From the NCBI GenBank assembly GCA_965112735.1, contig CBCOSG010000001.1:124001-188000 (forward strand): a DNA stretch of 64,000 nucleotides, read 5' to 3'. The position numbers and the translations under genes are program-made. Below are positions 10,526 to 25,689 of the stretch, one piece after another. Numbering within the stretch: the first letter of the stretch is position 1; each line of letters opens with the position of its first letter. This DNA comes from Phaeosaccion multiseriatum (lineage: Eukaryota; Protista; Ochrophyta, other classes). Under the pieces are notes generated by a model, which was not told the DNA's origin, did no database searches, and worked only from the letters and a program-made list of their open reading frames with translations.

Positions 10526-11098
10526 ATGGAACAAAAATTAAGAAAAAAAATCAGAGGTCCTGAAAATATAAAAAAAAAAACAGTTTACATTTTTCCCCGA
10601 TATGAAAATCGTACCTTCTTGGAGAAGGTCGACCTGTTCTTTTTCAGACTTTTCAACATTGTTCTATTTGGGCTGGTAGGATTATCCTCCCTTCTTGAGG
10701 TATTAATGTTGGATTTATTTTTACATGGGGACACACGTTTTACCTCGGGGATAACCCCAGGGGTTATCGCTATTCTCATACTTTTCGGTTTTGCATTCTA
10801 TATTCTTGAATGGGAGGTCAAAGAAGATCCCGGAGTAACAGAAAACTTTGGGAAGTTTCAGGGATTAAGCCCCCTTTCCAAGATAAAGTTTACCCTGTTT
10901 TGGTTCGCACACTATATTTTAGTGTGCATATTTGGAGGGACTTGTGCCTATTATGCGTACAAATACTCTTGTCAGCACTACCACCTCATACCAATCTCGG
11001 AGACGTACCCATATGAACCCTATCTTGGGTCTTTGGGTATATTGGGATTGTTCATTCTCTGGTTATACCTTGACCCTCCACGCAAAAGAAAAGAATAA
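10526..11098 (+). CDS. orf190, unassigned membrane protein with about 4 TM segments; paralogue of orf176
   Basis: Open in both arms; shares FLEKVDLF, NFGKFQGLSPLSK, YHLIPISE.YPYEPYLG with orf176. Confidence 0.8.
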   Translation: MEQKLRKKIRGPENIKKKTVYIFPRYENRTFLEKVDLFFFRLFNIVLFGLVGLSSLLEVLMLDLFLHGDTRFTSGITPGVIAILILFGFAFYILEWEVKEDPGVTENFGKFQGLSPLSKIKFTLFWFAHYILVCIFGGTCAYYAYKYSCQHYHLIPISETYPYEPYLGSLGILGLFILWLYLDPPRKRKE

Positions 11099-11201
11099 GA
11101 CCCCTATGGACTTTTACATTTGTTAAGAGGGGCTCATATAAATTTTACTAAGTCATTTTTGCAGAATCTTTTTGCAGTTAAATTTTATTGGATTCAAATT
11201 T

Positions 11202-11426
11202 ATGGTACTAGCAGGAAAACTTGTAGGAGCAGGATTGGCTACTATTGGACTAGCCGGAGCAGGAGTAGGAATTGGAACTGTATTTGGTGCCTTAATTTTA
11301 GGAACTTCGCGAAATCCATCTTTAAAAGATGAGCTTTTCCGCTTAGGTATCTTAGGTTTCGCTCTAACAGAGGCTATTGCTCTGTTTGCGTTAATGATGG
11401 CTTTCTTAATTCTTTTTGCTTTCTAG
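11202..11426 (+). CDS. atp9: ATP synthase subunit c
   Basis: [27 protein letters not shown]. Confidence 0.98.
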
Positions 11427-11478
11427 ATTTATATAGCAAGATTAAACCTTCAGGTTATAACTAAGGACTTCGTCCTCG

Positions 11479-11550
11479 TCCTCAGTAGCTCAGAGGTAGA
11501 GCGAATGGCTGTTAACCATTAGGTCATTGGTTCGAATCCAGTTTGGGGAG
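11479..11550 (+). tRNA. trnN: tRNA-Asn(GUU)
   Basis: AATGG-CTGTTAA-CCATT. Confidence 0.93.
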
Positions 11551-22090: not shown

Positions 22091-22149
22091 GAGCTGACAA
22101 GATTTTTCTTCCATTTGTGAAGTTTGTGACAAGCTTCAAGCAAAATAAA

Positions 22150-24828
22150 GAAAATCTTCACAAAGGGCATGGAGGGAATGCCTAGGGGCCCAGCCTCTGT
22201 AGACGTAGACAACAACGAAAGCTCGGAGGAAGGTCTTCGACCTGTGCACTTCGACCTTCTACCTTGGAAAACCATTCCGTTTGAGGAAAAACAGGCCAGT
22301 AAAGCCTGCAAAGAAGAGGGCAGACAAACTGAAACATCTAAGTAATCTGCTTAAGAGAAATCAACCGAGATACCGTAAGTAGCGGTGAGCGAAAACGGTG
22401 TAGGCTCTCTCCTAGACGACCTTGAAAGATCCAAATTAAAAAACGACTCCAGCTCAATAAAACATTGGATGGAGAAGAAAACCATAGAAGGTACAAGTCC
22501 CGTAGGGGAAGAAAAGGAGAGGATTCAAGTACTTTTCTGGCGATAGACAAGGAATATTGGGGAGCCATCCTCAAAGCCTAAATAGACTGGGCCACCCATA
22601 GTGAACAAGTATCGTGAGAGAAAGGTGAAACAGAGATTTCTGCTGTGAAATGTCCTGAAACTCCCTGCCTTTTAGGTGTTGAAGCTTTGTGGAAGTGACA
22701 GCCTACCTTTTGTATAATGGGTCAGTGAGTAAAAGATTAGGGGCAAGCTTAAGTTTAGGAAGGCAAAGGTCAATCGAGGAGTAAAACTTCGTGGAGTCCC
22801 AATTTTTTTTACCCGAAACCGACTGAGCTAAGATTGAACAGGTTGAAAAAGACAAGGCAACTTTCTTTGGAGGACCGAACCCGTGTATGTGGCAAAATAC
22901 TGGGATGATTTGATCTTAGGGGTGAAAGGCCAATCAAAGTCGGAGATAGCTGGTTTTCTGCGAAATCTATTGAAGTAGAGCGTCTTAATGGGAAATCCGG
23001 GGTAGAGCACTGTCGTAGGAAAGGGGAGGCAAAATCTTACTGACTTATGGCAAACTGCGAATACAGGATACGTCTTCAATCAAGGCAGACAGACCATGGG
23101 TGCGAAGGTCCTTGGTCAAAAGGGAAACAGCCCAGATTGATGGTTAAGGTCCCCAAAGGAAAGGAAGTGAAGAAGGAGGTGACGAGCTAAAGACAGCCAG
23201 GAGGTAGGCTTGGTAGCAGTCATCCTTTAAAGAATGCGTAACAGCTCACTGGTCGAAGTTTTTTGCGCCCACAATGTTTGGGACTAATCTTTCCTACCGA
23301 AGCCTCAAACCCTACAGGGTGGTAGCAGAACCTTCCGTAGGTCGAGGAAGATGAGGGGCAACCTTCATTGGAGATATCGGAATCGAGAATACTGACATGA
23401 GTAGCAACAAACCAGGAGGATCCTGGTGGCCTTAAATTCAAGGGTTTCCACGACAGATTTCTTCTTCGTGGGGGCTTGAGCTAATCTCAAGCCATAAAGA
23501 CGGTCCCTAAGACTGCTGACGAAAGCCAGGGTTGATGGGAGATCTTAGACAGGACGAAGCTGGCAGAGGAAGTAGAGGAGTATAGCTGGTCTCCTCTGCT
23601 TTAGCTCAGCTTCCAGGAAATACTTCTAGGAGCGGCACCGTATCGTAAACCGACACAGGTGAATGGGTGGAGTACACTCAGGCCTTTTGAGAGAACCGTG
23701 TTGAAGGAACTCGGCAAAATGACTCCGTGGCTTCGGTAGAAGGAGGAAGCCTTTGTAGGCTTGGCACTAAAGTGGGAGCGGCGACTGTTTAGTAAAAACA
23801 CAGGACTCTGCGAAGTTGTAAAATGATGTATAGGGTCTGACACCTGCCCGGTGCTGGAAGCGGAAGACCCGAAAGTGGAAGCTTTTAGGGAGAATGCCCA
23901 GTAAACGGCGGCTGTAACTCTGACGGTCCTAAGGTAGCAAAACTGATTGTCGGGTAAGTTCCGACCTGCATGAATGGTGTAACGACTGCTCCGCTGTCTC
24001 CAACACGGACTCAGTGAAATTCCCATGGTCGTGAAGAGGCGACCTCGCTGCAGCTAGACGGAAAGACCCCGTGCACCTTTACTATAATTTGAGCTGGGAA
24101 GCATGACATAGGTTGCGTAGTAGTAGGTGGGAGGTTATGCCGCAGATGAAAGACCACCCTCCTTCAGTCTAGCTTTCTTCACCTGACTTGGGACAGGCTC
24201 AGACGGGTAGTTTGGCTGGGACGGCAGCCTCCTAAAGAGTAACGGGGGTACGCAAAGGTACACCCTTCCATGAAGGAAGAAAAGGCGGAATGGCTTGATG
24301 TGTGCCTGACTGTAAGACTCACAAGTCGAACAGAGACGAAAGTCGGCCATACAGATCCGGTGGATGTGCATATGGGCACTTCACCGCTCATAGGATAAAA
24401 GGTACGCCGGGGATAACAGGCTGATCCTTCTCGAGAGCTCCTATCGACGGAAGGGTTTGGCACCTCGATGTCGACTCATCACATCCTGGAGGAGAAAAAG
24501 CTTCCAAGGGTTGGGCTGTTCGCCCATGAAAGTGGTACGTGAGTTGGGTTTAGAACGTCGTGAGACAGTTTGGTCCCTATCTACTGTGGACAACAATCTA
24601 AGGGAAGAAATTCTAGTACGAGAGGACCGAATTTCGGGGATCCATGGTGTACCGGTTGTGTGAGCACATGCAGTGTCGGGTAGCTACATCTCTAGAAGAG
24701 AATGGCTGAAAGCATCTAAGCCAGAAACTTGTCCTCAAGCATTGTCTAGGCCTCGTTTTAGACGAAAACGTGAATAGGAGGGTAGTGAAAGTCGTGTAAG
24801 CGGTGTAGCTGATCCTTACTAATTAGGC
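22150..24828 (+). rRNA. rnl: Mitochondrial large subunit rRNA, no introns seen (ends approximate)
   Basis: GAAACATCTAAGTA, GGTCCTAAGGTAGC, GGGATAACAGGCTGAT, CACCTCGATGTCG, sarcin-ricin loop AGTACGAGAGGAC. Confidence 0.97.
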
Positions 24829-24830
24829 TT

Positions 24831-25689
24831 ATGATGTTTAAATACATGCTGCGTCGTATGTGGAAACGAATAACAGATTTGGATACAGAGGTTTGGTTTG
24901 TAATACTGTTTGTAGCCTACTTTTTAACCTTTGTCATTTCCTCCCTTGGACTGTTTGAGGGTAGGTTTGATATCGTGTGTTCACTAGTGCAATTCAGCGT
25001 CCATCTGGGGTGGATTTTTTACTACCATAAAGAGGTAATTTTACCCAAGTTTAGAAAGGATAAAACCCGGTGTAGAGAGGGCAGTTATGTCGCATCTCTT
25101 TACCAGGATAGTCTGGGACACGAAGGTTTGGCAAAAGTACAAACTCTCTTGTATTCGTCATTTATCCTCGGAATCGGTCTACCACCAAAATACTCTATTT
25201 TGTTTTATCTCATAGGTTTACTCTCCTTATTGGCCTGTCTCTATTTACTGCCGGCGTATGTGCGATCAACCACACGACTGTTTCAGGAGTGTTTTTTGAA
25301 TCCTGGAGTACTCCACGCTAAAGGGTTTACAAAAAAAAGAATAGTGTGGGAAGTGGCTGTAGAACACGGCAAAAGAATTCAAATAATTGTAGCGGGGGCT
25401 AGTGGCAGATGTGTGGGTCGGAAAGTTCTTTTACGGTCTAGATGGAAGGTCGTCGCTGCAAAATTTCTATTCTTCGACGTTCGATAACTTCACTGCGGAC
25501 ACTCAAGAGAGTGTCACGAAATTCCGGGCCCTCGAAAGCAGGAGAGTCCCCTCAGACCTGATGAAGACGGCGTCGGGGAAACTGGATATAGGAGCAATAG
25601 ATTGGCTTCTTCAAGAGTATAACGCGGCTCTTGATCATTACGGAGAACTATATAAGGCTCAACTTGAAGATCGAGTCGAAAAACCTTAA
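24831..25689 (+). CDS. orf285, paralogue of orf280; split by one extra G near 25398 in both arms
   Basis: The 218-aa and 95-aa ORFs align end to end with orf280. Confidence 0.75.

Follow-up and report, generated by a model that had tools for sequence, protein, structure and literature searches.

Orphan membrane-protein genes and gene extensions in a repeat-rich mitochondrial genome: probable by-products of recombination rather than a single system

Why should six novel hydrophobic coding segments crowd into 15 kb of a mitochondrial genome, each beside a core gene, and do they belong together? The question is raised by a window of 64,000 nucleotides (G000:C17:124001-188000), part of a 224-kb contig, C17, in a 67-Mb, 22-contig eukaryotic assembly. 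A first-pass annotation listed open reading frames (ORFs) orf190 (between rps14 and atp9), orf176 (carrying a nad11 leader), orf280 (behind rns) and orf285 (behind rnl), together with a transmembrane tail on Nad11 and a transmembrane leader on Nad4. It interpreted them as one recombination-driven set of inner-membrane proteins, analogous to the ORFs of plant cytoplasmic male sterility (CMS). All six segments are present on the + strand in the places described, and the ORFs are not products of chance and are identical in most of their assembled copies. The recombination origin is supported and the single system is not, because the segments comprise two families under different selection and two independent changes at gene ends. 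We consider it fairly probable that the segments arose as by-products when a repeat-rich, ~56-kb mitochondrial genome of stramenopile type underwent recombination.

Results

The orf280/orf285 family

The gene orf280 (19312..20154, +; mirror copy 37584-38426, -) begins 239 nt past rns (17559-19073, +). Its relative orf285 occupies 24831-25689 (+) behind rnl (22151-24840, +), so that one copy follows each rRNA gene, and both are probably co-transcribed with rRNA. Hydropathy and a low-confidence model give orf280 a hydrophobic N-terminal two thirds followed by a hydrophilic, helical C-terminal domain of ~85 amino acids. The two proteins are ~51% identical over their full length (147/288 alignment columns), with 45% identity in the front part and 68% in the last 97 residues. 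The ratio of nonsynonymous to synonymous substitution rates (dN/dS, or omega) is 0.25, the corresponding ratio of uncorrected proportions (pN/pS) has a bootstrap range of 0.36-0.53, and differences are distributed over the three codon positions as 93/67/140 (p=1e-6). Saturation of synonymous sites in codons 70-185 (pS 0.75) contrasts with an amino-acid identity of 54% in frame, vs 29-30% in the other frames. The pair constitutes a genuine protein family on which purifying selection has acted for a long time.

The end of the family has a history of its own. In the last ~95 codons dS is 0.57, vs >1 elsewhere, with omega 0.30, and the flanks of the two copies are 88% identical, by which this part appears younger than the rest. 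Behind each gene lies a duplication scar; the first-pass annotation had placed several of the segments beside such scars. The one following orf280 (20225..20505, +) is a 90% copy of the rps8 3' end, a degenerate trnM and the rps10 5' start; the one following orf285 (25766..26046, +) has the rps8 3' fragment and then a functional trnM(cat) at 25869-25942. The module of rps8 3' end, trnM-like sequence and rps10 5' start occurs three times altogether (6784-7064, 20225-20505 and 25766-26046), and ARAGORN detects tRNA-Met only in the third copy, the other two looking degenerate. The C-terminal domain, the rps8 3' fragment and the intact or degenerate trnM form a module that was copied or converted more recently than the remainder of orf280/orf285.

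Described earlier as one ORF, orf285 is a coding segment on the expected strand but is not read in a single frame. Its hydrophobic front part (24831..25398, +) begins at the rnl 3' end and enters a G-run at 25394-25398, and the back part (25396..25689, +), which encodes the hydrophilic C-terminal domain, continues in a different frame. The split is found in all 8 assembled copies. Both window copies have G5 there and the remaining six have G6, and the frame would be continuous only with G4 or G7. The G6 form reads GCG GGG GGC TAG, which is a G_GGG_GGC slippery heptamer with a stop immediately after it. With a -1 slip or a true G7, orf285 would read ...VAGGLVADVWVGK..., alignable residue for residue with ...IIGGLLVDVGIGK... 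of orf280. An assembly error is plausible, because seven-base runs elsewhere are under-called in some genome copies; however, core genes are intact in the majority of their copies, a pattern unlike that of orf285, where all eight are affected. The omega of the back part suggests that it is still translated, or was broken only recently.

No relative of this family came to light. A profile search with the orf280/orf285 alignment through 1.84 billion representative proteins gave zero matches, a word-index protein search with orf280 revealed no relative, and there was no hit in Pfam and NCBIfam at E<=1, no usable hit in the ESM Atlas and no relative in a scan of metagenome contigs. An exact cluster look-up indicated that proteins of this genome are absent from the protein collection. 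Copies of orf280/orf285 were not found in the nuclear and plastid contigs, and tblastn of orf280 against the window recovered only copies of its own family and no core-gene segment.

The orf190/orf176 family and its nad11-leader chimera

The second family consists of orf190 (10526..11098, +; mirror copy 46639-47211, -) and orf176 (13638..14168, +; mirror copy 43569-44099, -). The former lies 10 nt past rps14 (10189-10515, +) and 73 nt before atp9 (11172-11426, +); it is a single-copy gene, identical in 4/4 copies, with about four hydrophobic helices indicated by hydropathy. The latter is the first gene inside an inverted repeat, and therefore has two copies per genome. The proteins are 57% identical, with divergent helices and invariant loop blocks, GVTxNFGKFQGLSPLSK and YHLIPISExYPYEPYLGxLGILGL.

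Selection on this pair is harder to read. In the comparison of paralogues proposed in the first-pass annotation, a dN/dS far from 1 was obtained for orf280/orf285, in contrast to a range that includes 1 for orf190/orf176, and classical evidence for constraint is weak here. Other features nevertheless speak against pure neutrality. The two sequences differ at 143 positions in 528 nt, yet both frames have stayed free of stops and indels, an outcome obtained in only 0.2% of neutral simulations (P=0.002). Of the codons that differ, a share of 0.26 is synonymous in frame vs 0.11 off frame. While pS is flat along the gene, pN varies from 0.08 in the loops up to 0.45 in helices 1-2, and within the loop block at codons 91-120 pN is 0.08 vs pS 0.21. 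Since frames are kept, synonymous changes are in excess in frame and pN varies over a flat pS, orf190/orf176 would be a translated, fast-evolving pair in which the loops are conserved and the helices run free; decay in place of translation seems unlikely.

The claim that orf176 carries the nad11 leader holds. The start of orf176 comes from a segment at 13574..13660 (+), in which 64 nt of leader are followed by the initial 23 nt of coding sequence; this segment corresponds to the original nad11 leader and start at 21130..21216 (+), the source of the orf176 5' end. The match covers 87 nt at 93% identity and has a local score of 144, vs 19+-3 for shuffled sequences, and the motif was found at nad11 and orf176 only. 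Between the orf190 5' end and the nad11 leader, similarity does not exceed that of shuffled sequence. By these alignments, orf176 is a true chimera with a captured leader and start. Because only orf176 has the captured leader and orf190 shows no similarity to it, orf190 is the probable parent and orf176 a probable truncated copy.

The chimera sits near the edge of the repeat. The outer edge of the inverted repeat (13407..13502, +) duplicates the final ~95 nt of cob and is located 30 nt past the nad4 stop; the match begins at window position 13407 in every unit. At cob itself, the gene ends at L010 2867 and the repeat begins at L010 ~2772, i.e. inside the cob 3' end. A copy of orf190 lacking approximately its first 27 codons would have landed just inside this edge and there acquired the nad11 leader and start, giving rise to orf176. 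The origin by recombination and duplication proposed before is in this way supported by the chimera at the repeat edge as well as by the scars behind orf280 and orf285.

Searches with the orf190 family revealed no relative in the word index, in Pfam and NCBIfam (E<=1), in the ESM Atlas or in the metagenome scan; the exhaustive profile search was not applied to it. Copies of orf190 and orf176 are absent from nuclear and plastid contigs.

A further repeat was observed near nad11. It is 95 nt long and 89% identical between 21033-21127, directly upstream of the nad11 leader, and 27094-27188, upstream of a nad9 fragment. It may represent a shared 5' module; it showed no significant RNA fold. The nad11 leader region was also considered as a structured RNA and rejected (z-score -0.36).

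Relation between the families and known genes

Alignment of profiles with hhalign indicated that orf280/orf285 and orf190/orf176 are unrelated. This, the dN/dS of 0.25 vs 0.74 and the simpler explanations available for the two extensions (a shifted stop and a shifted start, described below) do not support the view of the six segments as one set. For all four ORFs the description as transmembrane is based on hydropathy segments and helical low-confidence models. Their two other frames contain 4-20 stops each, hence the ORFs are far longer than expected by chance.

None of the segments could be assigned to a known mitochondrial gene. The orphan segments were compared with tatC, atp8, sdh, atp4 and ccm, and these candidates were rejected, as no match to a Pfam, NCBIfam or PDB family was found. 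The best profile match of either family to PDB sequences (E=0.32) was to an unrelated archaeal hypothetical protein. The tatC gene is missing from the mitochondrial DNA (mtDNA), and TatC matches occur only on contigs C18 and C19; hhalign of both families against TatC of this genome gave a probability <1%. The match on C19 (G000:C19:60001-60615) is intact and that on C18 (G000:C18:56869-57482) has several stops; both are probably plastid-type copies.

Extensions of Nad11 and Nad4

The nad11 gene (21194..22090, +; mirror 35648-36544, -) encodes only the iron-sulphur (Fe-S) half of the protein (residues 1-217) and ends 60 nt before rnl. Pfam domains, all three Fe-S-binding (one 2Fe-2S and two 4Fe-4S), reach residue 202, and gap-free homology to NuoG and the 75-kDa subunit extends up to residue 217, with ESWDF aligned to a conserved RSWEL. 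The tail reported earlier is indeed hydrophobic, and its extent is corrected to 81 codons (21845-22087, +), i.e. residues 218-298. A frameshift artefact at an A6 run was rejected as its source, since SWDF, read in frame, aligns to the conserved RSWEL motif. The closest relative found comes from a metagenomic contig (gene order nad7, two tRNAs, nad11, tRNA); it is 66% identical, stops at residue 210 and has no tail. In Trachydiscus the N-terminal half of Nad11 carries an extension of 60 amino acids without clear membrane character.

The tail is open at P=0.016 and has an A-poor, coding-like composition, its codon-model score is -0.02, and no other match to it occurs in the genome. Apart from one weak nuclear hit, the mitochondrial nad11 is the only strong Fe-S-half gene in the assembly, therefore its protein is needed. 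Because the Fe-S domain of Nad11-type subunits sits high in the matrix arm of complex I, a true membrane anchor placed immediately behind it would be difficult to accommodate. Most likely the tail arose recently in this lineage, when the reading frame ran on beyond the former stop at the site of the gene split; as a hydrophobic appendage it may be tolerated or not.

The C-terminal half of Nad11 gave no match in the window at E<0.5, and PF09326 (a 51-position model) found nothing when searched exon by exon through the 67-Mb genome, the larger molybdopterin model not having been tried. A 1.7-kb A-rich stretch at window 15600-17340, between trnY and 5S, contains no ORF >=60 amino acids on either strand. 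It was considered as the site of a decaying C-terminal half and rejected: a single match of 33 amino acids on the minus strand (17223-17321) had E 0.6-1, with no Pfam hit.

The case of Nad4 is more evenly balanced. In nad4 (11644..13377, +) homology to NuoM starts at residue ~99; the profile TIGR01972 matches over its full length with 489 bits, model positions 6-481 lying on residues 100-571, and a NuoM alignment places model positions 6-486 on residues 99-575. The leader extends from the first ATG at 11656 to ~11937 (+) as an open, T-rich stretch of ~93 codons without a match to families, to the window or to the rest of the genome. The only ATG is codon 5, TTG is found at codons 79 and 90, and codons 79-90 offer TTG, ATA and ATT. 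The leader is open at P=0.013, and its base composition (T 0.45, A 0.20, third-position T 0.55) resembles that of membrane genes and of the nad4 core, unlike the A-rich spacer. The open extension reported before exists at the level of the ORF, but translation may begin elsewhere, non-ATG starts near the usual position being possible. A TTG start giving a canonical Nad4 is conceivable, because nad5 in the same genome cannot start with ATG. Judging from the reading frame and composition, the chances that the leader is a true N-terminal extension, and not untranslated sequence upstream of a non-ATG start, are about equal.

Genome setting and neighbouring genes

Contig C17 encodes rns, rnl, a permuted mitochondrial 5S rRNA and 48 tRNA genes as well as the usual nad, cox, atp and ribosomal-protein genes, and is therefore mitochondrial DNA. 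A stramenopile host is suggested by the permuted 5S gene and by the Fe-S-only nad11. The contig represents a ~56-kb genome assembled ~4x head to tail as a concatemer. The genome has a pair of 15.4-kb inverted repeats arranged head to head, centred at window ~28825, and a ~25-kb single-copy region; the real inverted repeat in the window is 13407-28810. A 28.8-kb palindrome (window 1-57747) was rejected as a real structure, being an artefact of two flip-flop isomers joined in the concatemer.

Genome copies differ through homopolymer-length indels. In the window + arm nad1, nad2, atp6 and nad7 are broken by such errors and are intact in most copies. The rps12-rps7-nad9 stretch is fragmented in the same arm (96% identity and 71 gap positions vs other copies), and the other copies mostly have longer open frames. 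The errors in these genes and in this stretch are located at window 861, 5317 and 9256, in 26000-27720 and at L009 ~6700. The assembly is reliable when read by the majority of copies, with a homopolymer error profile, and the agreement of copies rules out the ORFs as assembly artefacts.

Among the neighbouring genes, rps10, rps12, rps7 and nad9 are present in the mtDNA. A short atp8 (20592-20744, +; 50 amino acids, MPQFDQITFF..., matching Pfam YMF19 at positions 1-50) sits between the scar behind orf280 and trnP and is shorter than the length cut-off of the ORF list. Ribosomal proteins rps2, rps10 and rps11 are strongly diverged, with only 28-39 bits, barely above the Pfam cut-offs. Three further ORFs, 61280-61768 (162 amino acids), 62008-62484 (158) and 14638-15084 (148), gave no Pfam hit. 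Codon usage, scored in the first two, is core-like, and the third occupies the position expected for rpl5, behind rpl14, without a hit. The nad5 ORF overlaps trnS(tga) upstream (window 2405-2530) and has no ATG near its conserved N-terminus; its start must be a non-ATG codon, probably GTG.

Discussion

Taken together, the segments would have arisen separately, as two unrelated, lineage-restricted ORF families, each duplicated, and two changes at gene ends. For orf280/orf285 a role may tentatively be proposed, which we hold possible rather than probable: they could serve the respiratory chain, ATP synthase or ribosome at the inner membrane, as subunits or assembly factors that are either specific to the lineage or diverged beyond recognition. 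The proposal is drawn from the usual gene content of mitochondrial genomes; in ciliates and other protists, many mitochondrial ORFs once without assignment proved to be such subunits or assembly factors.

A reading that goes considerably further, and that we think unlikely, takes orf280/orf285 as translated, new mitochondrion-encoded inner-membrane components that act in the respiratory chain, ATP synthase or at the ribosome-membrane interface in a relative of brown algae; the orf190/orf176 pair and both gene extensions might belong with them. Repeat-mediated recombination would have given birth to them and duplicated them, and orf285 would be expressed through -1 frameshifting or transcript slippage at the G_GGG_GGC-TAG site. 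Several observations weigh against the explanation favoured here. The orphan ORFs have a third-position T of 0.27-0.29 vs 0.41 in core membrane genes, and they score lower than those genes on the codon model of this genome. AlphaFold2 models of the two families reach a pLDDT of only 49 and 48, too poor for a fold search. The break of orf285 in every copy belongs here too, as does the behaviour of orf190/orf176, with dN/dS 0.74 (range 0.56-1.10) and no preference of the differences for any codon position (46/44/53); a young duplicate in neutral decay would explain the latter pair, although we give this a low probability.

The same observations lead to an alternative that survives best among those considered, if as an unlikely one, namely that most of the segments are non-functional. 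Here orf190/orf176, the Nad11 tail, the Nad4 leader and the broken orf285 would be untranslated or neutral, and hydrophobic only by virtue of a T-rich coding strand, in line with the negative AT skew of the + strand. An omega not distinguishable from 1 without codon-position bias, a tail that is missing in the nearest relative and neutral in codon score, a frame lost in all copies of orf285, and a non-ATG start in nad5 that nad4 could share would all fit. Reading frames, however, are kept beyond neutral expectation in orf190/orf176 (P=0.002) and in the two extensions (~0.013-0.016), composition is A-poor as in coding sequence and unlike the A-rich spacer, constraint persists in the orf285 back part, and orf280 cannot be covered by this explanation.

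Highly diverged standard genes (tatC, tatA, sdh3/4, atp4, rpl31, rps1) are a quite improbable source of the orphans. Absence of tatC from the mtDNA, the low bit scores of rps2, rps10 and rps11 and the ORF without a hit at the rpl5 position show that such divergence would have room here; on the other side stand the lack of any Pfam or NCBIfam hit at E<=1, the unrelated best PDB match, the hhalign result with TatC, the zero matches of orf280/orf285 among 1.84 billion proteins, and an atp8 already placed at 20592-20744. Most improbable are CMS-like selfish or addiction elements that harm the organelle or hold it hostage, as offered by the first-pass annotation, since in spite of the orf176 chimera, the hydrophobic character of all segments on the coding strand beside core genes and scars, and helices of orf190/orf176 diverging with pN>=pS, only 1/4 ORFs is chimeric, the orf190 5' end resembles the nad11 leader no better than shuffles, and orf280/orf285 have been under purifying selection long enough to saturate synonymous sites, unlike young CMS genes.

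Under the favoured explanation of recombination by-products, there is no sign of a coordinated system, and unassigned ORFs are common in protist mitochondria, so the value of the region is moderate. It lies in two points. Selected and duplicated, yet relative-less among billions of sequences, orf280/orf285 are a candidate lineage-specific respiratory or ribosomal subunit. Gene gain has, to our knowledge, almost never been seen in mitochondrial genomes, and the region offers a clean case for studying organelle gene birth.

Among known systems, plant CMS ORFs are recombination-born chimeric mitochondrial genes that capture the promoter and start of core genes. The nad11-leader chimera would be the same kind of capture, here in what seems to be a stramenopile alga. 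In orf176 a hydrophobic body of other origin follows the nad11 leader and initial codons, and the gene lies at a repeat boundary, on the coding strand and with core genes as neighbours. The likeness ends there, as the other three ORFs are not chimeric and orf280/orf285 are old and under purifying selection. In addition, the host is apparently an alga, in which male sterility is meaningless.

For Nad11, an Fe-S-only split gene is known from brown algae and their allies, Cafeteria and Thraustochytrium, and eustigmatophytes have nuclear-encoded Nad11 Fe-S halves with new C-terminal extensions (PMC4824035). As in the split systems, the gene described here terminates at the junction of the Fe-S and molybdopterin-like domains, and the split NDUFS1a chain (PDB 8iuf) is listed as a counterpart of the Fe-S-only Nad11. 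The strongly hydrophobic 81-residue tail sets it apart, the nearest relative (210 amino acids) being without one.

The closest parallel to the orphan families is provided by orfX, orfY and orfZ of eustigmatophytes, lineage-specific mitochondrial ORFs without a homologue even by sensitive profile tools, of which orfZ has two predicted transmembrane helices; they may have arisen de novo, have been transferred or be diverged ancestral genes (PMC4824035). The families described here are likewise mitochondrion-encoded and without a detectable homologue. They differ in that the signs of constraint come from diverged paralogues within one genome and not from conservation across species, and in that each family is duplicated and flanked by scars.

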